Source of the DNA: Vitrella brassicaformis CCMP3155
Taxonomy: Eukaryota; Protista; Chromerida
Direction of reading: 5' to 3'
Assembly: GCA_001179505.1 (NCBI GenBank)
Contig: CDMY01000477.1
Span: forward strand, 298,602-362,601
DNA: 64,000 nt
Positions 10,549 to 53,147 of this stretch are shown here, piece by piece (within the stretch, counting starts at the first letter, position 1; each line of letters opens with the position of its first letter). A model generated the notes under the pieces. The model did no database searches, had not been told where the DNA came from, and was given only the letters and a program-made list of their open reading frames with translations. The translations under genes were made by a program, and so were the position numbers.

Positions 10549-11309
10549 CTCCTCGCTCCTCCCAGGTTGCGAGCTATTTGAAAAAAGCTCGCACCTTGGG
10601 GCACAAGAAGTTTCTCGTGTTTGCCATCTCTGCATTCCATACTGCCCCGCGATTCCACCGTAGGGGCCCTTTCAGTGCAGTGCCCGCACGTTTGCTCCGC
10701 TATAATTGCCTTGTACAGAATGAGGGGCGTTTCGAATCGCCTCTGTGAATCGTGGAATGAGAACGACTGGTGGGACGGCGGCACTGCAAAATTCAACAAG
10801 AGCAGTGCCGAGATGAGCAACGGTGAGTTTTCTGGAGAGGAACCAACAAGGCAACAGAGTGTGCATGCTCTTCTATATCTGCAGTGCGTGAGGTGTCTGC
10901 CGAGGGCCCGCCGCACACACGTGCGAAAGCTGCCGCCGCCGAAAGCGGTGGCAAGGGGGCCAGGGAGAGGAAACACAGCGAGGTGACGGCCACCGCCAGC
11001 AAAATCGGTTGGATCATATAGAGGCGAGAGACCCCTAGCTAGCGGGAGGACTGCGGACTGGTTGGCCTTATCTTGTCTGCAGCTAATGTCAACGTCACAT
11101 CAAAGCACCCATCGCATGCCAGCCGTCCCAACAACGAGTAAGCTCACAGCAATGAATCCACAGAAGCATTCATTCATCAATTCTCGTATTGTCTGGTCCT
11201 CAGTCTGTCTCCGAAGCGCCATGCTGTGGCCACCAAGGCCTCCCCCCGCCCCTCTCTCCCCAAACCCCGCCCCTCGGCCCCCTCCTCCCACCACGACGAC
11301 GGCCAGAGA

Positions 11310-11540
11310 ATGGCTACTGTGCTGCAGCCTGTCTATGGTGGTCGGAGTGGGGCGATCCCGGAGAGGGGCATCATGCGCAAGGACAACGTGGTGAAGAACA
11401 TTCGTGAGAAGAACGATCGTTCAAGAGGTGATAGGAGAGCTCGCGACATAGATTTGTCATTGGCACCAATGCATGTCGGTCTCATATGTGTCTGCAGGCC
11501 AGAGTGCGTTGGCCGCACCGGTCCCTGCTGGGGAGGATAG
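11310..11540 (+). pseudogene. Degenerate copy of small ORF MATVLQPVYGGRSGAIPERGIMRKDNV... (paralog of 51880-52149)
   Basis: Direct peptide similarity to the minus-strand ORF at 51880-52149, but it lacks the RDH motif spacing and the C-terminal WKMPRF segment. Confidence 0.5.
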
Positions 11541-11753
11541 TGGGAGCAAGAAGACGACGGAGACGCACAATGCCGAGACGAACATCGGTGAGTGGAGAGC
11601 TCGCGACATAGATTTGTCATTGGCATGAATGCATGTCGTTCTCATATGTGTCTGCAGGCCAGAGTGCGTTGGCCGCACCGGTCCCTGCTGGGGAGGATAG
11701 TGGGAGCAAGAAGACGACGGAGACGCACAATGCCGAGACGAACATCGGTGAGT
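11434..11753. repeat. Tandem duplication, 2 x 160 bp
   Basis: Unit GGAGAGCTCGCGACATAGATTTGTCATTGGC...GCCGAGACGAACATCGGTGAGT starts at 11434 and again at 11594 and is nearly identical. Confidence 0.95.
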
Positions 11754-12658
11754 TAGTTAGTTCTGGAGAGGAACCAACAAGGCAACGGAGTGTGCATGCT
11801 CCTCTATTTGTGCAGTGCGTGAGGTGTCTTCGCACACACGTGTGAAAGCTGCTGCCCTCGGTCCGTGTTCAGGGCCCGAGTTACTCGAGGGCTCCATGTA
11901 TCATTGTTCTTGACTATCGCTGCCTACATTTTATATTTGGCAGCAGCTTGACGTTTTTGATCGCAATGAGCAGCCCCTGCGCTTTCTGCACTGACTGTGA
12001 CTGTCAGTGTGCTTTCATCGACTGTCTGTGACTGTCAGGGTTGAATTGATGGATGGATGGATGGATGGTGCGTCATTGATTCATTCATTAAACGCTCAGT
12101 TGTTTGGGGTGGCTGGGCTGCATGGCATGTGTCGACTGTTTGACGTGACGAGTCGGTTGTGCAACAGCCAGCCGGGCCCATTCATCCTTTGTACGCACCA
12201 CTGTCTTGATCATTCCCTCGTGGCACACACACAGACCACCAAGTGCCAGCCACTCACGATTGATTAGACACACACACGGGGAAAAACTGCCTGCAGGCCA
12301 CGTGTTGCGTAGCACAATAGAGGCAGAGAGAGAGAGAGAGAATTCTGCTTAGGTGCAGGATCACCGTAAGTAGCCATAAACTGAACGGACCATTACACAC
12401 ACACACACAACTACTAAGTGTGCAGTACGCAACACCCCCAATCCAATCGAATTATCTAGCGCACACACAGGAGACCCACGTGCAGCACACAAGTGACGTG
12501 ACATGACACACTTTGTGTGTGTGCGACAAACACAAGTGGACAGACAGACAGGCCACAGGGCCAGTCGAGAAACAGATACACATAAATAAGGATATGGAGA
12601 GGCAGGTACACCCAGACAGACAGACACAGCGGCCCTACTCGTTTATCTGTGGTATCAA

Positions 12659-15600
12659 TCAGCCCAGCTGAGCCTCCAGGCTGTGTGAAATACAACACAA
12701 CACAACACACACATCAGCACACACACACAGAAAGAGTGAGTGAGACACACGATGGTTCCATCCGTCAGTAGATCAGTTCAGTACCCCACACACCCACCTG
12801 TTTTTGTCGAAGACTGCATCGGGGGCGAACTGTCCGTGCAGCCCTATCGGCAGGGCATACCGCAGCGGCAGCCGTCTTATCGGCCCCTTGCTGACGTCGC
12901 GCGCCTCAAAGATCAACAACTGCACACATAACACACTCACCCAGCCACCATGCCGCCGCCATGCACACAATGAGGGGCGTGTGTGTGTGTGTGCTGACCT
13001 CCGACTTCATGTCTTTGCCGTTGAAGAGATAGGCCAGGAGGTATCCGTCGTCTTCGCGCGTGTGTGGGTGGGGGTAGGGGGGTCGGCCCTTCTTGGGGGC
13101 GAACACCATCTCGCCCACAAACTCATAAGGCTTGGGCGTCCACATCTAGGTGAGTGACACACGATGGACGGACGATGGATGGACAGAGGCACGGCGTACG
13201 TCTGTGTGAGTGAGTGTACCTTACCTGTCTCTGCTTTGTGTGGACATCCAGCTTGACGGCCGCCTGGATGGGGCCGCTCGGACCCACCTCGGTCTGCGCG
13301 CCGAACCAAACATACCTACACGCCAGCCACAGCACACGCACCAACAGACAGACACGTCAATGTGTCCTGTGGATCCCTCCCGCCCGCCCTTTTCGCACGC
13401 ACACACAGACGCCCACCGACCGGTGTTTCTGTGTGACGACTTTTGGGTTGACGGTGGGGAACTCCACATTTCGATCGGTGACGAGCGGCTCCTTAGTGAA
13501 GGTGCCGTCGTGGGGGCTCAGACGGTAGCGATACATCTGTGTCTGACCCAGCCAAGCAGACACAACACAACAGAGAGAGGGAAAGTGACTGAACGCTCTG
13601 CCTGTGCCTGTGTATGTGTGGATGGGAGTACTTTGGACGTCTTGGCGAAAAGGTCTTCTATGTCGGAGTGGATGGGCCGCTCGTCGTCGATGGCGTACTT
13701 GTCGTACGAGTCGAGCGTCAGCACATCGACCACCACCTCACCACCATTGGCTGGACGAACACACACACACGCACACGCACACGCACACGCACAGACACGA
13801 GGGCATGGATGTGTGTCCGTGTGTGTGCAGGTCCCACTCACTCACCGCTGTCGTCGTATGCGTTGACAAAATGAAAGTTAAAGAAGGAGTCGATCGGGAC
13901 GCTGATCAGACCCTCTCCACCCTGACACACACCCACCCACCCACACACACACAGAGAGAGAGAGAGAGACAGAGAGAGAGTGCACAGCCACATCTCTCCA
14001 TCCATGTGTGTGCCATTTACCGACCGTCCTGTTGCCGTCTCTGGGCAGCAGGTGGACGATGGCGGGTTTGTTCTTGTCGAAGTTGATGCACTCGAAGGCC
14101 GTCTTGGTGCCGAGGATGAAGTCAACCGGGTTGAAGTTGGTCGGGCACTGGAACCAGACATAATACCTGCCACCCACCCACCCACCCACCCACATACACA
14201 CACACATACACACACATACACAGAGAGAGAGAGTCTTCATGCCGTCTCGTCTGGTCGTTCCTTCCTGCTGACTGACTGCACTGACTTGTCAGTGATAGCC
14301 CAGTCGTGCATGAAAGGCATGCCCCTGACACTGAACGACTTCCGCGACACACACTCAAACCGGTCGTCATACTCCCAGGCCGTCACCTGCCCACACCCCA
14401 CACAAACAAACAAGCAAGACTCACCTCACACACGCCCCTCCCTCCCTCCCTCCCCCCCCCCCCCCCCCCNNNNNNNNNNNNNNNNNNNNNNNNNNNNNNN
14501 NNNNNNNNNNNNNNNNNNNNNNNNNNNNNNNNNNNNNNNNNNNNNNNNNNNNNNNNNNNNNNNNNNNNNNNNNNNNNNNNNNNNNNNNNNNNNNNNNNNN
14601 NNNNNNNNNNNNNNNNNNNNNNNNNNNNNNNNNNNNNNNNNNNNNNNNNNNNNNNNNNNNNNNNNNNNNNNNNNNNNNNNNNNNNNNNNNNNNNNNNNNN
14701 NNNNNNNNNNNNNNNNNNNNNNNNNNNNNNNNNNNNNNNNNNNNNNNNNNNNNNNNNNNNNNNNNNNNNCCCCACACAAACAAACAAGCAAGACTCACCT
14801 CACACACGCCCCTCCCTCCCTCCCTCCCTCCCTCCCTCCCACCTTGCCCGAGTTGAGCCCGCCCCTCTTGGCGCCGAAGTTGACCAGCCGATTGCGAGCG
14901 GGGTCGATCTTGTAATGCGCACTGAAGGGCTCCTTGGTGCTTTCCAGTGAGCGGCCAAGGTCAGTCGCCCCCGAGCACCCCAGAGCAATCGGGTCAATGA
15001 TCCACGGCGCCGCGCCTTCCCACAAGGCGAGCAGCACGCCGGACCAGAAGACGACGTGGGTGTTGGCCATGTTGCGGATGAAGGTGTCCAAGATGTTGCG
15101 CGTCCAGCCGCCCTTTTTCTGGGTGCCGACGCCGCGGTAGAGGATCCGGTTGGCTTGGAGCTCCTTCAGGTAGTAGGGGCTGCGGACGAATCTGTTGCGG
15201 AAGAACGCAGTGCGGTTCTGGAAGGTCACCGCTGCGATCTGCATCCATCGATACATATCAAGTGTGCTGTGTGTGTTGGCCTCTCCTCTCTTGGCCTCAC
15301 TGTGTGCTGGCTATATGGGGCTGGCTGGTGTGTGTGTGTGTTGGTATGTATGGTTACCAACCATTCCGTGGCCGTCGAATGGGTGAGTGATTTTCTCGTC
15401 GCCGATCTCAAACTTGGCAGGGATGTTCTTGAAGAACGTCCCCTACACACACACACACACACACACGAGCAGAGGAGTCCCAGAGTCAGGACACCTAGCT
15501 ACCGTCCAAACTGACCTCTAGGTCTTTCGGTATATCTCCCTCCAGGTAGTAGTGCCCCTCCGGCGGCTCCACAAAGCTCCGCTCCAACGCACCCACGTCA

Positions 15601-16368: not shown

Positions 16369-20962
<4,594 letters not shown>

Positions 20963-30344: not shown

Positions 30345-31240
30345 TCAGATGGTTGGCAGCAGCGCCAGGGAAGGGCCGTCCATCTTGTTGCGGGCGATGG
30401 CCATTCCCCGGGGGAAGGCAGCAGGACCACTGCCGCCCTGCTTGGGCGCCTCGGTGGTCCAGAGGGAGATGTATGCCGACCCATTACGCCCCTTAAACGT
30501 CTCGATGTATGCCGCAAACTCGTCGCCCTCCTCGTCGCCATGCAGTACGAATCGGCGTGAGTCGCCGTAGATGCTGTCGATGGTGCGGCAGCCGCCCCAC
30601 AGGAGCGGCTGCTGGGCAATCAGGGCACAGATGCGACGACACTCGGCAGAGGGCGGACGCCAGGACCGACTCGGCACCAAACGCGACGACAGCCCGGCCA
30701 TCCTGAAAGAGCAGGCAGCGGAAAGACAGACAGACAACATAACACATTGCTGTGCTGTTTATTCTCTCATTTCAGTCGCTGCATACCCTTCGATGATCAG
30801 TCCTCTGAAGCTGATGTACTCGCCACCACCGTCTGCAGACACACAGACACACAGCGGCAGACACCATCCATGTCAAGTTGCCTCTCCAGTGGTGCTTTGC
30901 CCTCTCTCTCTCTCACGTCGGCACGGGGGATCGGCCGCATCGAATCGATCTCGATATCTGGCCGGCACCGTCTGCTGTGTGTGCACCGTCACCTCCCACC
31001 CCCCCAGCCTCTCCCGCCCACTGGCATCGCGCGTCAGCCGCATGCCATTGCTCAGTCGGTGGCTGTAGAGGGCGTATTGGCGGATGCTGGGCGGGCGGCT
31101 GTCGATGACGGCCTTGCTGCCCACGTGCTGCAGGTCGTCACCCGTCAGCTCGATGGGCAGCGACCGGATCTTCCTGCAGGTCTTCACAGCGCAGATCAGA
31201 TGATGACTGGCAAGATGAACCATCGCAGTGCGTTTCAGTG
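30345..31240 (-). pseudogene. 5'-truncated member of a lineage-specific F-box-like family (paralog of 31673-33874)
   Basis: LPIELTGDDLQHVGSKAVIDSRPPSIRQY...WEVTVHTQQTVPARYRDRFDAADPPC|DGGGEYISFRGLII|MAGLSS...WGGCRTID..RRFVLHGDEEGDEFAAYIE...GPAAFPRGMAIAR aligns exon by exon with the plus-strand paralog. No F-box-like N-terminus was found upstream. Confidence 0.75.
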
Positions 31241-31672: not shown

Positions 31673-33874
31673 ATGATGTCACAGTGGTGGTCTTCAGGCG
31701 TCGTGTGGGCTGCCGTGAGGCCAGCGGGCGGCAGCATGAGCAGCACATCGGCATCAGCTGCTGCAGGTGGGCTGACTGACTCACTGAGTGGGAGAGAGAG
31801 GAAGGGGCTCACTTGTGTGTGTGTGTGTTGGCCAGGTGGTGGTGGATATAGAAATGAATCTGCAGTCAATGACATCAATCGCAGCGCCACACAGAGTGAC
31901 GGGCTGCCGGTGAACCATCAAGCCATCACAGCCACACAGACCAGAGAGCGCCACAGCGTGTCGGTGTGCTCATAGTGATGTTGTGTCTGTGCCTGTCTGC
32001 CTGCCTTTGCAGCTGTCCTCTGGTCTGTTGGCGCAGCTGTCGGACATCAAAGCTCAGCTAGCCGTTGCCGTGTTGGACTCAAAGGTGAGAGGACAGCACA
32101 GAGGGCGGGAGAGGGCGGATGACTTATGTGTGTGTGTGTGGTGTGTGCAGTGTGTCAAGAAGATGGGCATCAGTGACACGATCGACTACCTCATTCAGAA
32201 GGTCGTTAGTCAGCGCATAGCTGACCTGCCTCCATGTGACACTGTGTGGTCTGTGGCTGTGTGCAGGGGTCTGTTGGCGAGAGGCGCCTGCCGATGGTGG
32301 AAGCGGCCGCGTCAGAGATCTCCGGTGCGCTAGGCAGCCTCCAGAATGGACTCAAACGACTCAACGGCGCGGCACTGGTACACACACACATCTACTGTCG
32401 ATCCTTCGACTGGTGAATGAGTGCATGTGTCTTCTCCTGCCCGTGTGTGTGTGTGTGTGTGTCAGCTGGAGGGCCACTCCAAGAACTTCGCATTTGTCCC
32501 TCCAGACGCCAAGAAGACCACCAGAGAGACCACTGACACACACAAGAAGGTACGGCCGCTGCACCGTGAAGCCATCATGACGGCCAAAAGTATCAGCGCA
32601 TGTGTGTATGGTTTGATGTGTGCAGGATAGTGTTGCAGACAGCACACCCGGTGTGCCCGAGTCGTCAAGTGCTGCGGCCCCGCCCTTCTTGCCCGGTCTG
32701 TCCCTGCCCACCGACGTCCTCCGCGACGTATTCCTGCCCCTCATCAGCCCACACAACACAATCGCCCTCTGCCGCACATCCGAGACGGTCGGCAGCGCAC
32801 TCGAGGCCGCCCTGGTCGACGACATCGACAGCATCATCCAACGCGACGGACTCAGAGGCGTCATCGGCTACGCCCCGATGCGTCAGTCGACCAGCGTCCG
32901 TCGTCTGGTGCGTCGGCTGCGGCTGATCCGCCTCCACTATGTGATGGTGACGGGGGGCGACTGGCGGGGCAACGTGCCGGTGCTGCGGATGGCCAAGAGC
33001 TGTGGACGAGTGCAGCAGCTGCCCATCGAGCTGACGGGTGACGACCTGCACCACGTGGGCAGCAAGGCCGTCATCGACAGCCGCCCGCCCAGCATGCGCC
33101 AGTACAGCCTCTTCAGCCACCGACAATGGGACAACAGGATGGGGCTGACGCGCGATGCCGACGGGCGGGACTACCTGTGCGAGTGTATGGCTTGGTGGGA
33201 GGTGACGGTGTACACCGAGCAGACGGTGCCGGATGAGTATCGAGATCGATTCGACGCCGCCGATCCCCCGTGCCGACGTGAGAGAGAGAGGGCAAAGCAC
33301 CACAGGAGAGGCAACTTGACATGGATGGTGTCTGCCGCTGTGTGTCTGTGTGTCTGCAGACGGTGGTGGCGAGTACATCAGCTTCAGAGGACTGATCATT
33401 GAAGGGTATTCAGCGACTGAAATGAGAGAATAAACAGCACAGCAATGTGTTATCTTGTCTGTCTGTCTTTCCGCTGCCTGCTCTTTCAGGATGGCCGGGC
33501 TGTCGTCGTGTCATGTGTCGCATTGGTCCTGGGATGCGCCCTCTGCCGAGTACAATCGCATCTCCGACCTGGTGGCCCAGCAGTCGCCCCTGTGGGGCGG
33601 CTGCCGCACCATCGACTACAACATCGGCGGCCCCTCCCGCCGATTCGTCATACTCTGTGGCGACGAGGAGGGCGACGAGTTTGCGGCATACATCGAGATG
33701 GCCAAGTGGCCTGACGGGTGGACAGACATCATCCTCTACACCAGCGATGCGCGCCGGCAGGGCGTCAGTGGCCCTGCTGCTTTCCCCCAGGCAGTGGCCA
33801 TCGCCCACAGCAAGACTGGCGACGACATCGCATTACTCCCAATGGTCAACGAGGCCATCAACACAGGTACTTAA
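31673..33874 (+). CDS. Lineage-specific family protein: N-terminal helical exons + F-box-like motif + conserved FDAADPPC domain
   Basis: Short spliced exons (LSSGLLAQLSDIKAQLAVAVLDSK, MGISDTIDYLIQK...) lead into LSLPTDVLRDVFLPLISPHNTIALCRTSETV (F-box-like), LPIELTGDD..., RFDAADPPC, WGGCRTID, GPAAFPQAVAIAHSK. Confidence 0.75.
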
Positions 33875-47468: not shown

Positions 47469-50142
47469 CCTGTGTGTGTGCGTTTGTGTTGGTGAAATTG
47501 AATCAAATGCAGCCTTTACGTTTAACCCGGACACCGGCAACTCGTGCTGGCTCAAATCCACGCCAGGCAGCCGAGCCAAGTAGGCCACGCCATACGCACA
47601 GACACACACACACACACACACATACACATGCACAGGCTTAATTGGGCGGGCGTGTATACCGGATTCCCTTCTGGCGGGTGCAAAATGGGCGGGGGCGACT
47701 TCTGCAGTACGCACACGAATGGCTAGCTACCTGCCTGCCTGTTTGCCTGAGACACACAGGCGGATGCATGGAAACTCTGTCTCTCTCTGTTTGTGCGTGT
47801 GGCCGGCAGTCGACAGGGAAAGTCAGTCAAGCCGCGGACGAGCACATCCATCCACACACTTATCCACTCATCGCTCTCTCTGTCTCTCTGTCTGTGTGTG
47901 TGTAGGCGGTCGCAGGTTCAACGCCGTCATGAAGGAGGGTGCGCACAAGTCTCTATGTATATGTGTGCGTGGGCCCTTTGCACACAATACACACCTGCGC
48001 GTGTCGTGTGTGGGTGTGTGCGCAGGCACCTACATGGTTATGTACGAGAACACCGGTGCGCATTGAGCGAACCCATTCATCCACAAATCAGTGCTTTCCT
48101 GCCTGGGGGTCTCTCAGATTTCTACGGCAACGACATCAAGGGATTCAACACAGACAGCGCGGCATCGTGCGCGTACGCGTGCTTCAAACACCCCGGGTGC
48201 AAAGCAATGTCATGGGTCACTGACGGCCGGAAGATCTGCCTGCTCAAGAGCAAACCTGCAACCAGAAAGTAAGTATGAGAGGCAGAGGTAGAGACAGAGA
48301 CAGAGACGCAGAGACACGTTCTTTCTGTGTCGATCAATCAGGGGACATCGCCATCGGTATTCAGGCGAGATTTCTTCCGCATGCCCTTCCGGCAGATTCT
48401 GCTGTAAGTACGCACATTCTCATCAACGTCGATCGCCTCTCCGTGTGTCTGTGCCTGTTCCTGTGGCTTGCTTGTTTTGACGCGCGAACCCGCACAGACG
48501 AGAAGCAGGGTGAGGACGCCAATGTACTCTCATGCGTGATGAAAAGATCTCTCTCTCTCTCTCTCTTTTTCTCTCCGTCACAACTAAAGGATTCGAGTCA
48601 CCTCCCGAGTCACTGCCGCAGAACGCCCCACAAATCCAGAGATACGGTCGGTGAGAGTGAGGCATGGACGCGCTCACGCACAAAGGCATGCGTGGACGCA
48701 TTGAATGGGCCTTTGTGTGACAGGCAAGGGGCCTTTCATGGTTATGTTCCAACGAAAGGGTCGGTGAGGCATGCAGGGGTCCAGTCGTGGGTGGGCGTCT
48801 GGGTGACTGGATACGCGGATGTGATGTCTGTGTGTAGATTACTGGGGCAACGACATCAAGAGCTTCCATGCGCAGTCGATGGAGGCCTGCGCCAAGGCGT
48901 GCTTCGAAACGAAGGGGTGCGGGGCTATAGCGTGGAATATTGGCGGCCGCAACTGCTGGCTCAAGACTAAGGCGGCGAACTTCCGGTCGCTCAGTTGGCA
49001 TGTCCCCTGTGTATCTGTTGTCATCCTTATGCGTGCTCTCTCTCTCTCTGCTATCCGACGCCCAGCCACAACCACTGGCGCGCGTCGGGTTTCATTTCGG
49101 ACCTCTGCAATAAAGGCGATTTTTGCATCGAGAAGGACCGTAAGCAGGCACACAGAGACGCAATGAGCGCCTGTGGCCGGCCGGCCATGTGTGTTTGGTT
49201 CTTGGTTGGCTGGATGCAGCCGGCAAGAACATCGCATTGGGCAAGACGGCGTCGGCGAGCGGTTCGTGGCGCGGCACCACACCGAACTTCGGCATCGATG
49301 GTCAGGACTGTGTTCACCCCCCACCAACCCCACAGCTACATCCACACAAACAGACGCACAAACAAGCAGACATCCACACGTGCAGGCAATTCTTTTGGGC
49401 GGCATCCGGTGATGCACAGTAGAACGGGATGTGGCCCACACTGGTCAGTCAGTCAGTCAGTCAGTCGGCTCTTGGATGCGACGCGATGCGATCGGTGTGT
49501 ACGTCTGCCTGTCCGTCCGTCTTTGTAGGTGGCAGGTGGATTTGGGCAAGGACTACCCCGTCGGCAAGATCATCGTATATAACCGATACGATTGCTGCGA
49601 CAACAGGTAGATAGCTAAGGACGTGACGTAGCTACACGCACATTCGACATACATACTCTCTCTCTCTCTCTCTCTCTCTCGCTGACATGCAGGGCTGACG
49701 GCATTCAGTTCTGGATCGGCGACAACCCCCGGACAAAGACAGGCAACGAATTGTGCGGCACACTCAAAGGTCACCCATATGCCCTATGGGACTGACCACA
49801 CACCAGACACGTCACACATCGTCATGGCATTGCATGTTGATCAGGCACCAAGTGGCTCTATGTGCTGTGGTGTAACATAACGGGCCGATACGTCTACGTC
49901 GCACACACCAAACACTGCACACACATCAACATCGCCGAAGTAATCAAGGCACCCAGCCCCGCCAAGCCAACACACACACACACACACACACGGACGGGAC
50001 AGTGTGTGTGTCTCTCTCTGTGTGTGGGGTGGGCATGTAGATCCAGGTCTATGAGCAACAACCGCTTCCTCCCGCGAATTCGTTATCACCTGAAATGGAC
50101 TTTTTCTCAGGTGAAAACAGACTTCAGCGTGCACTCATGTGA
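45786..50142 (+). CDS. Secreted adhesin/lectin: 4 PAN/apple modules + C-terminal fucolectin (F5/8-type C-like) domain; 3' end may extend to ~50577
   Basis: Signal M|LASIAFCVWGCVAVGAHA. Four repeats: DYRGNDI..EECARKCFEHGSCK|AM..CWIK; DYRGAPF..DQCASHCLNDQRCT|AFTF..CWLK; DFYGNDI..ASCAYACFKHPGCKAMSW..CLLK; DYWGNDI..EACAKACFETKGCGAIAW..CWLK. Then NIALGKTASAS..., WQVDLGKDYPVGKIIVYNRYDCC..R, GRYVYV, NIAEV|IQVY. Confidence 0.9.
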
Positions 50143-50323
50143 TCGCTCTGCTCCTCCTTGGAGGTCTCACACATCAGTGTAATGATAGTGATTCTGCAAT
50201 GGGACGTGCCGCTAGATAAGGCCTGGACGAACGAATCGCTCTGTCATTCTCTCGAGTCACACGATTGTGTGCTTGCTTGTCAGTCAACAATCAATGATGG
50301 ATCATTTAGATTGTCATTCAACT

Positions 50324-50845
50324 CATTCATTCATTCATTCATTCATTCATTCAGTGAATCACTGCATCACACTGCAGACAACCCTCCTCGGTTGCTTCGC
50401 TTGGGAGACGGCCGTGATCCTGGCCTGACTGGCCACGATGTGGCCGGCCATGGATGTCTCACATCAGCCATACATGGTCAATATAGCCGGCCACCCTATA
50501 GGAAAACACCCACCACCTCCCCCGTCGGGTCTTCCGGCGGAAGAGCCGACGGGGGACTCCCCTACGTCCATGGGTAGTATCGGTGCCTTCGACTGGAAGG
50601 GTTCATAGTTCGTGTCCCCCGTCGGCTCTTCCGCCGGAAGACCCGACGGGGGAGGTGATGGGTGTTTTCCTATAGGGTGGCCGGCTATATTGACCATGTA
50701 TGGCTGATGTGAGACATCCATGGCCGGCCACATCGTGGCCAGTCAGGCCAGGATCACGGCCGTCTCCCAAGCGAAGCAACCGAGGAGGGTTGTCTGCAGT
50801 GATGCAGTGATTCACTGAATGAATGAATGAATGAATGAATGAATG
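50324..50845. repeat. Near-perfect long inverted repeat: arms 50324-50557 and 50614-50845, 56-nt spacer
   Basis: The right arm is the reverse complement of the left arm apart from one substitution (ACCCACCACC vs ACCCATCACC), one 2-nt indel and microsatellite length. Confidence 0.98.
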
Positions 50846-51879
50846 GAATCAATTCATTGATTCACTGACAAGCAAGTACACACTTATGTGCCTCGACTGA
50901 CGCCCTGTCATTGCGGAATGGCGAAGTCTTTTTTTCTGTGGGTTTCACACAAGCACTTCACTGCAAATGCGTCGCATTCGGATCATTCGGGCCTGTAAGG
51001 GCTCAAGGCTTGCCTGACGCTGGCAAGAAGTCTGTTTTCTCATGAGAAAAAGTCCATTTCACGTGATAACGAATTCGCGTCAAAAGAGCCGATCGCACAC
51101 GAGGCCGGACAACAAGACATCCCAGGTACTTACTGATTGCGCATGCATGTCTCAGTCATCCAGTAAACAACCACTCTCTCTCTCTCTCTCTCTCTCTCCC
51201 TCATCCCCTCTGTGTGTGGGTGTGTGTGTGTGTAGTCGCTGCGCCGGATGTACCGAGATTGGGCACCAAGACCGTCGGCGAAGAGGGAATTGTCGTCACC
51301 TTGTAGCGCATTGACTTGTGGACCATGCATTTCGATCGCCGCTGCTCTGCACTGCTTTACATATGTGTGTGGATATACGCGTAGGTCCTGCCCAGACCAG
51401 CTTTTTGTGCTGTGTGTGTCTCCTTCTACACGTGTAAGCGTCTTTTGGTCCTTCCTGCCGCTAGCTGAAGGTTGCAGTGCTTCGTCCTCATTCACGCACA
51501 GAGGATGCAGTGTGTCCCACCAGCATCACACGTACGAGCACCCACCCAGCCACCCACAACTATCACAAATACCACTCTCTCCGTTGGCATCACATTCTGT
51601 GTGTCTCGGTGTATGTGTGGAGCTCCTCCCCGCCGTCCCTCCGGCTATCTGCCCGTCCGAGTGTGAGGCCCTCCTTCCCTCCCAGCAGCAGAGAGAAATG
51701 AGCGAAAAGGGCAGATAGAAAGCCTTCACGTCGCCACTTCCTTTCCCCCTTCCACCGTATGCATGCCTCGCCATTGGTGCCAATGCTCCAAATGAGAATG
51801 CGATCGACTCAGCGACGGCGATCAGTGGCATACTGGCGGCCCCTCAAACCTGACAATTCAGAAAGAGACACAAAGAGAC

Positions 51880-52149
51880 TTAAAGCACCGATCGGCAACC
51901 ATCTTCATGTTTGCCCGCCTGCGCACCAGTGTCCACCGCGCTCCTGGCTTTGCTGAACCGGGGCATCTTCCACTGGCTCTCCACCTTGCCCCCAGAGGCC
52001 GTGATGGACCCGCGCGAGGCCCTCACGGCCTCGTCATGACAACGGATGTACTTCATCACGTTGTCCCTGATGTGGTCCCTGGGCATGATGCCCCTCTGCT
52101 GCATCGCCCCACGCACACCACCATAGGCCGGCTGCAGCAAAGTGGCCAT
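51880..52149 (-). CDS. Small ORF or fragment resembling the N-terminus of enkurin-domain protein ENKD1-like proteins
   Basis: MATLLQPAYGGVRGAMQQRGIMPRDHIRDNVMKYIR...SQWKMPRFSKARSAV. The family resemblance is from memory only and no enkurin domain is seen. Confidence 0.4.
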   Translation of the reverse strand: MATLLQPAYGGVRGAMQQRGIMPRDHIRDNVMKYIRCHDEAVRASRGSITASGGKVESQWKMPRFSKARSAVDTGAQAGKHEDGCRSVL

Positions 52150-52428
52150 TCTATGGCCGTCAAATGCGTGATCGTGGTGCGAGGAGGGGAGGGGTCTGGA
52201 GAGAGAGGGGCGGGGGGAGGCCTTGGTGGCCACAGCATGGCGCTTCGGAGGCAGACTGAGGACCAGACAAGACGAGAATTGATGAAGGGATGTTTCTGTG
52301 CATTTATTGCTGTGGGCTTACTCGTTGTTGGGACGGTTGGCATGCGATGGGTGCTTTGATGTGACGTTGACATTAGCTGCAGACAAGATAAGGCCAACCA
52401 GTCCGCAGTCCTTTGATGTCTCTCGCCT

Positions 52429-53147
52429 CTATATGATCCCACCGATTCTGCTGGCGATGGGCGTCGCCCTGCTGCTTTTTTTCTTCCCCTCCCTGGCCCC
52501 CTTGCCAGCGCTTTCGGCGGCGACAGCTTTCGCACGTGTGTGCGGCGGCCCCTCGGCAGACACCTCATGCACTGCAGATATAGAGGAGCATAATAGAGAA
52601 GCATCATGCTCTGTTGCTTCTGCCATTCCGTTTTTCTGAAGAACTCACCGTTGCTCATCTCGGCATTCTGCGTCTCCATCCTTTCCTTGGCCCCACTATA
52701 CTCACCACCAGGGACTGGCACGGCCGACACACTCTGTGGAACTGCAGGGCCTGCACACACACATGAGAACGACATGCATTCATGTCGATGACAAATCTGC
52801 GTCTCGAGCTCTTTCTCACCTTTGCCTTTATCTCCAACCGTCTCCACTGTCTTCTCAGTGCCCCTTTCCCTTTTCGTCGAAAGGAAAGCCCCGTCAGAGA
52901 GGGCCTCCTTCATCGCAGTCCCTCTGAAGTGCAGCCGAGCCACCTCTGCAATGTCGGCACGGCCCCTGTCCTGCGTCAACGTCTCGCGCCGCCGGACACC
53001 CACCGCGGCATCACCACCGTCGCCGACGTGATCCGCCGTGAGGGCGGAGGTGGCCTTGACAGCGGCCTCCTGCTCGAGTGTTCTCCTCATCATGAGGCCG
53101 TCGAATTGGCGGCGATAGCTTCGGTATCGGGGGGTCTCATCCTCCAT
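52429..53147 (-). CDS. Hypothetical low-complexity spliced protein (paralog ends at TAG 11019-11021)
   Basis: ORF MEDETPRYRSYRRQFDG..., then GT-AG-bounded exons ending VHEVSAEGPPHTRAKAVAAESAGKGAREGKKKSSRATPIASRIGGII*. The paralog at 10.9 kb ends ..TASKIGWII*. Confidence 0.5.

Follow-up and report, generated by a model that had tools for sequence, protein, structure and literature searches.

In a 64,000-nucleotide stretch of the genome of the chromerid Vitrella brassicaformis CCMP3155 (contig CDMY01000477.1, positions 298,602 to 362,601 of the forward strand; hereafter the window), a large palindrome of about 1 kb lies near the 3' end of a gene for a protein with PAN and fucolectin-like domains. 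We conclude that this palindrome is very probably a mobile element, namely a foldback-type, non-autonomous class II transposon with terminal inverted repeats (TIRs) that resembles miniature inverted-repeat transposable elements (MITEs) and was inserted into a late coding exon of the gene. The element proper spans positions 50077-51075 of the window (999 bp). It belongs to a dispersed family, has TIRs flanked by a target site duplication (TSD) and is non-coding, and the family's mobility is documented by empty sites elsewhere in the genome. An earlier note on this DNA had favored a hairpin-RNA locus derived from the adhesin gene itself, naming a foldback element as an alternative; it is the alternative that is borne out by the dispersed copies, TIRs and TSDs described below.

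To account for the present arrangement, we propose that a transposase supplied in trans made a 4-bp staggered cut within a coding exon of 82 nt, close to the 3' terminus of the multi-PAN/fucolectin-like gene, and that insertion of the 999-bp non-autonomous element would then have duplicated the target CGCG. The inserted element would have been non-coding and built as it appears today, with imperfect 49-bp TIRs, subterminal segments that differ between the two sides, and an internal palindrome of two arms of about 234 bp around a 56-nt spacer.

A dispersed family with terminal inverted repeats and 4-bp target site duplications

We searched the V. brassicaformis CCMP3155 genome assembly (72,700,666 bp in 1064 scaffolds) with the sequence from 50000 to 51150 and obtained 130 matches on approximately 40 contigs, at 71-96% identity. 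The boundaries of these matches are sharp: in the query they fall at 77/78 and 1076/1077, equivalent to 50076/77 and 51075/76 of the window. A pattern made from the 30-nt terminus occurs at 40 genomic sites, 20 in the forward and 20 in the reverse orientation, while the reversed control pattern occurs at none. We considered whether the other copies could be segmental duplicates that share their flanks and rejected this possibility because the insertion sites are independent, with at least 20 different flanks in the genome. Thus, a search for other copies of the arm and for TSDs, which the earlier note had recommended, reveals a dispersed family.

In six copies, the two ends lie no more than about 1 kb apart (512-999 bp), and all six are flanked by a 4-bp TSD, which is perfect in five copies and contains one mismatch in the sixth. 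The duplicated sequences are CGCG (the copy at 50077-51075), CCTA, CATG, CCAA, GATC and GATT/GATC. Several two-ended copies are internal-deletion derivatives of 512-681 bp that retain both ends. The length of the duplication could be fixed at 4 bp because occupied and empty sites can be compared directly. Several copies have common flanks, with AACGTGTGGATC before and GATCCCGTCAGG after the element, meaning that they sit inside another repeat. The empty site, in its predicted form with a single GATC, has perfect matches at four loci and a match with a single mismatch at one more locus, and over 600 bp on either side these empty loci can be aligned with the occupied one at 83-90% identity. The repeat that hosts these copies is at least 1.2 kb long and is found both with and without the element (contig C875 compared with C254, C484, C704, C861 and C642). 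Its occupied version has itself been multiplied, with six to seven loci having identical flanks.

At the locus in the window, the left TIR (50077-50125) starts with AATTCGTTATCAC and is identical at 46 of 49 positions to the reverse complement of the right TIR (51027-51075), which finishes with GTGATAACGAATT. The two copies of the TSD, CGCG, are found at 50073-50076, where the left copy forms the last 4 nt of the left part of the putative interrupted exon, and at 51076-51079. The three mismatches between the TIRs are mostly side-specific characters of the family rather than decay: left ends contain CACCTG and right ends CACGTG in most copies. The left-specific subterminal segment (50126-50323), which contains a TGA stop at 50140-50142, is 84-96% identical in other left halves. 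Its right-specific counterpart (50846-51026) is 83-89% identical in other right halves and is not homologous to the left segment. Between these segments lie the left core arm (50324-50557), whose outer end carries a (CATT)7 run, the asymmetric 56-nt spacer that forms the foldback loop (50558-50613), and the right core arm (50614-50845).

Many members of the family are incomplete. Solo or paired core arms occur at more than 20 other genomic places, and many copies are halves, consisting of one terminus and one arm, or solo arms, some of which stop at contig ends or N gaps. We considered whether the half copies might be parts of a single longer master element; this was rejected, as the sequences on their far sides are mostly unrelated. 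The half copies are therefore truncations or assembly breaks.

We also found a sister family that has the outermost AATTCG and the inner motif GAAACGGACTTTTTC in common with the family at 50077-51075, with a different middle. It is represented by about 15 termini and starts with AATTCGCTTTCTTGGC. A 3-kb member of this sister family (C620:36803-39824) is nested in a copy of the family described here and is flanked by a 4-bp TSD, AATC. Sister-family sequence is also present at C477:280158-280886, outside the window.

The element has no coding capacity. When ten open reading frames (ORFs) in and around the element were compared with Pfam, nothing credible was matched within the element, the sole internal match being at chance level (E 0.023, under the cut-off). 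A 139-amino-acid ORF from the arm has no relatives in a word-indexed protein collection, and an exact look-up of the ten ORFs found none on record as a called protein. The earlier note had described each arm as an intron end, running from (CATT)n to CTGCAG, followed by an exon-like ORF. This description does not hold, as the sequence in question is internal to the element and common to other copies, and the ORFs have neither a Pfam family nor relatives.

Palindrome geometry and likeness of the arms

Self-comparison of the window sequence delimits the palindrome at 50073-51079. Its core is a 234-nt inverted repeat (50324-50557 and 50614-50845) with one mismatch and one 2-nt indel, such that 231 of 232 aligned bases are identical, and the arms are separated by the 56-nt spacer. 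A GC-rich hairpin of about 39 nt closes each arm beside the spacer (50518-50556 and 50615-50653). An outer inverted repeat joins 50073-50125 to 51027-51079 (50 of 53 nt identical, or 94% complementary), and a weaker extension of 33-36 nt lies just outside the core (50252-50287 and 50861-50896, 83-85%). The remaining left (50126 to approximately 50250) and right (approximately 50897 to 51026) segments are mutually non-homologous. The predicted RNA fold of the 999-nt element has a free energy of -728.6 kcal/mol, compared with -328.6 +/- 9.0 kcal/mol for dinucleotide shuffles (z = -44.5). The element is a long inverted repeat able to form double-stranded RNA (dsRNA), and its fold stability is far beyond chance.

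Of the features that the earlier note had described, the core arms, the spacer, the single substitution, the 2-nt indel and the nested GC hairpin in each arm were all reproduced. The 50/53 identity of the outer arms was likewise confirmed, except that the outermost 4 nt are the TSD and lie outside the element; the outer arms had seemed 4 nt too long because CGCG is its own reverse complement. Of the more diverged outer arms that the note had described beyond the core, we recovered the short 83-85% stretch beside the core, but no decayed continuation out to the 49-bp TIRs. The proposed gradient from old outer arms to a homogenized core is thus refuted, since unrelated left and right segments intervene and each is conserved in other copies.

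Palindromic copies are found at the locus in the window and at three other loci (C380, C808 and C620), where the arrangement of arm, hairpin, spacer, hairpin and arm recurs with homologous spacers. Therefore, the palindromic layout is a trait of the family and not a peculiarity of this locus. The spacers fall into two types: that at 50558-50613 is about 85% identical to the C620 spacer, and C808, C380 and two half copies have the second type. Every copy retains the GC hairpin, and a compensatory change from C-G to G-C is present in both C380 arms. This conservation and the compensatory change hint at a structural role, for example in cruciform formation or protein binding.

We placed 23 arms from different copies in a maximum-likelihood tree, in which three palindromic copies are represented by both arms. 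The two arms of one copy pair with each other in the copy at 50077-51075 (Shimodaira-Hasegawa-like approximate likelihood ratio test [SH-aLRT] support 92) and in C380 (98), and the C808 arms likewise group together, within a clade of four with an SH-aLRT support of 99. Arms of the same copy are 98-100% alike (231/232 at 50077-51075, 168/168 in C808 and 213/217 in C380), exceeding the 87-96% identity observed between copies. Judged from these alignments, such a pattern would need either arm-to-arm homogenization in transposing lineages or repeated re-formation of the palindrome. For the arms at 50077-51075, we infer a young copy combined with arm-to-arm homogenization. Their identity may be overestimated, as de Bruijn assembly can even out minor differences between arms, and the true value is perhaps somewhat lower. 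Arm-to-arm gene conversion, which the earlier note had suggested, is compatible with the arm tree and identities, whereas the outer-arm gradient from which it was argued is absent.

The host gene and competing explanations

Upstream exons on the + strand match PAN_1/PAN_4 four times and the F5/8-type-C (fucolectin-like) domain once in Pfam, with some short exon pieces being too short to score. We derived the exon and intron layout from sequence signals and computed reading frames piecewise by arithmetic, with no joined spliced model searched. On the + strand, the exon containing the end of the lectin domain extends to 49939 and ends in phase 0. It is followed by a putative intron at 49940-50040, with a GT donor after GCC GAA, a (CA)n...(GT)n interior and a TAG acceptor at 50038-50040. 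The left part of the interrupted exon (50041-50076, +) comprises 12 codons, is free of stops and carries on from the end of the F5/8-type-C (fucolectin-like) domain. The right part (51080-51125, +) comprises 15 codons plus 1 nt before a GT donor at 51126, and its frame agrees with that of 50041-50076 when the element and a single CGCG are left out of the count. A further predicted intron (51126-51235, +) runs from this donor to a (CT)n(GT)n...TAG acceptor, and the putative last coding exon (51236-51306, +) stays open, in the phase that follows from 51125, up to a stop at 51304-51306.

Based on this layout, the element most likely interrupts a coding exon of 82 nt toward the 3' end of the gene, with typical introns on either side and a frame that would be continuous without it. 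With the element in place, the frame would end at the TGA at 50140-50142, 64 nt into the element, and about 40 C-terminal residues would be replaced by 21 element-encoded ones, unless the element is partly spliced out. The left TIR had looked like coding sequence because the frame of the exon runs on to this TGA. The earlier note had taken the left outer arm to be coding sequence of the gene's last exon, and formally it can be read so, but only because the insertion interrupts an exon. The further claim that the palindrome mirrors the 3' end of the adhesin gene fails, as the arms do not; only the frame of the interrupted exon continues into the left TIR. Introns in the window are stereotyped, with (CA)n or (GA)n near the 5' side and (CT)n or (GT)n directly before a CAG or TAG acceptor (e.g., 49940-50040, 51126-51235 and 17425-17473), and they yield hundreds of spurious direct and inverted repeat families.

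When we searched the genome with the flanks on either side for a paralog, they proved unique, with low-complexity matches only, which speaks for an insertion. As the flanks are unique in the genome, the assembly therefore contains neither a paralogous source of the arms nor an empty allele. An ORF-length test across the six insertion sites did not discriminate, the genome being GC-rich. Several points weigh against a transposon insertion in this exon. The exon model itself derives from sequence signals. An empty allele of the site at 50077-51075, looked for with each flank, was not present in the assembly. The sequences beyond the half copies were compared and are mostly unrelated, and the diversity of the family may be partly an assembly artifact. 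No autonomous copy or transposase was found; the elements with related ends of 5.6 kb (C843) and 3 kb (C620) contain N gaps, and their ORFs, judged by eye and not Pfam-scanned, do not resemble a transposase.

We next weighed the transposon reading against other explanations of the palindrome. It could be a functional hairpin-RNA locus, transcribed as part of the host gene, with the stem of about 234 bp diced into small RNAs that regulate genes, either the adhesin family or, in a weaker form of the idea, the transposon family and, in cis, the host mRNA. The RNA foldback is predicted to be extremely stable, and the element would lie in the sense strand of a transcription unit according to the exon model. 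A check for Dicer and Argonaute, recommended in the earlier note, recovered Piwi-domain exons at four loci above the Pfam cut-off and two weaker matches, as well as RNase III-domain exons at four loci. Hairpins derived from MITEs are sources of small interfering RNAs and microRNAs (miRNAs) in plants and animals. However, the arms match no gene sequence outside the transposon family, and the adhesin family therefore cannot be the target. An Rfam scan of 49500-51600 detected only sub-threshold resemblances to miRNA precursors, on both strands, the best being MIR1846 (54 bits versus a gathering threshold of 77.5), as would be expected of any long hairpin. Moreover, nothing marks the copy at 50077-51075 as selected rather than merely recent. 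We therefore consider a functional hairpin-RNA locus unlikely, and the specific version put forward in the earlier note, in which the hairpin was built from the adhesin gene and directed against its family, is not supported, as the arm matches are all transposon copies and stop at the TIRs and the gene flanks are unique. A read-through pre-mRNA would nevertheless be predicted to form a near-perfect dsRNA stem of about 234 bp. Given the Piwi and RNase III exons, dicing of such dsRNA is conceivable, and to judge from the matches, the resulting small RNAs would correspond to about 40 transposon copies, not to the adhesin family.

It seems very unlikely that the element behaves like an introner, such that all or most of it is spliced from the pre-mRNA and the gene still works. 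The left TIR contains a donor-like CAG|GT (50110|50111) that would leave phase 1, like the original exon end at 51125, and a splice joining 50110 to the acceptor (51235|51236) would preserve the frame of the last exon. Yet this agreement of frame is a one-in-three coincidence, and the donor-like site lies 34 nt inside the element, whose boundaries, like the TSD, have neither GT nor AG. Furthermore, the right end has CAC where the mirror image of the left end would give CAG, as do most right ends of the family. An even more elaborate scenario, which we regard as a long shot, would combine the two preceding ideas in a proto-introner foldback family of alveolates, in which a usable splice donor in the TIR, in a suitable phase, lets genes tolerate insertion into exons, while the transcribed, homogenized arms feed RNA interference that polices the family and dampens the host gene in cis. 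Scarcely credible, finally, is an assembly artifact in which short-read de Bruijn assembly or a chimeric library produced the second arm or made the arms nearly identical. For the published assembly, Illumina reads were assembled with velvet (k = 75) and gaps were then filled (PMC4501334). In this kind of procedure, palindromic arms share graph nodes and small differences can be smoothed; many of the other copies also break off at a contig end or an N gap. Against this, the same layout occurs at three other loci, one with a spacer of about 85% homology; the asymmetric spacer and both junctions are assembled gap-free; and the arms still differ by one substitution and one indel.

The window contains further repeats. 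A segment of about 0.75 kb located 1 kb downstream of the element (52072-52824) has an inverted duplicate 41 kb away at 10865-11754 (84-95%). The genome has no further copies, so the pair is a segmental duplication of local origin rather than a transposon. The window also has a second inverted repeat of large size (30383-31161 and 33018-33815), with arms of up to 350 nt at 91% identity, approximately 1.9-3.1 kb apart; it represents a pair of genes in inverted orientation or else another element with long arms. A long stretch of poly-C at 14433-14472 runs into an N gap, where the assembly breaks at a homopolymer.

Significance and relation to known systems

In the published analysis of the Vitrella genome, class II elements amount to only 0.17 Mb and no family among them is named, and our literature search found no paper tying introners or the 50077-51075 family to Vitrella. 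The family has not previously been described in V. brassicaformis, although it is an ordinary kind of feature. Its recognition removes a tempting wrong reading, that of a purpose-built hairpin gene directed against an adhesin family. It also matters to users of the gene model, as the C terminus of the extracellular PAN/fucolectin protein is probably truncated or altered, and such proteins have been discussed as forerunners of apicomplexan adhesins. The locus offers a handy test case for whether chromerids splice out or silence transposons carried in exons.

Introners of Micromonas, Aureococcus, dinoflagellates and Amoebophrya (PMC7789003) provide one point of comparison, as in Vitrella, too, an element with TIRs and a TSD probably occupies a coding exon of an alveolate gene and has a hairpin that would draw the exon ends together. 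Unlike introners, the Vitrella family numbers only tens of copies, many of which reside in other repeats and not in genes, and the element lacks splice sites at its boundaries, which sets it apart from introners as defined.

Variable-sequence TSDs of 4 bp are shared with Sola, Ginger, Academ and Chapaev (CMC group), superfamilies reported to have TSDs of this length. The likeness to these superfamilies concerns the TSD; the Vitrella termini begin with AATTCG, and no transposase could be tied to the family. In Drosophila, the arms of FB elements consist of tandem subrepeats and the TSD is 9 bp, and Galileo has a TSD of 7 bp. The Vitrella element resembles FB and Galileo in having a large internal inverted repeat that makes it nearly palindromic, and in that the arms of the same copy are the most alike. 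It differs from FB in that its arms are unique sequence except for the (CATT)7 run, its palindrome lies inside distinct 49-bp TIRs and its TSD is 4 bp; by a strict definition, it is not an FB element.

Compared with MITEs such as Stowaway, Tourist and hAT-derived families, the element is large, its 999 bp exceeding the approximately 800 bp below which strict definitions place MITEs. Its TSD is 4 bp and variable, rather than TA, TWA or 8 bp, its left and right subterminal segments are unlike each other, and no cognate autonomous element was found. What it has in common with MITEs are TIRs, a TSD of fixed length, the lack of an ORF, tens of dispersed copies and internal deletions, together with insertion in or near genes and a strong hairpin if transcribed.

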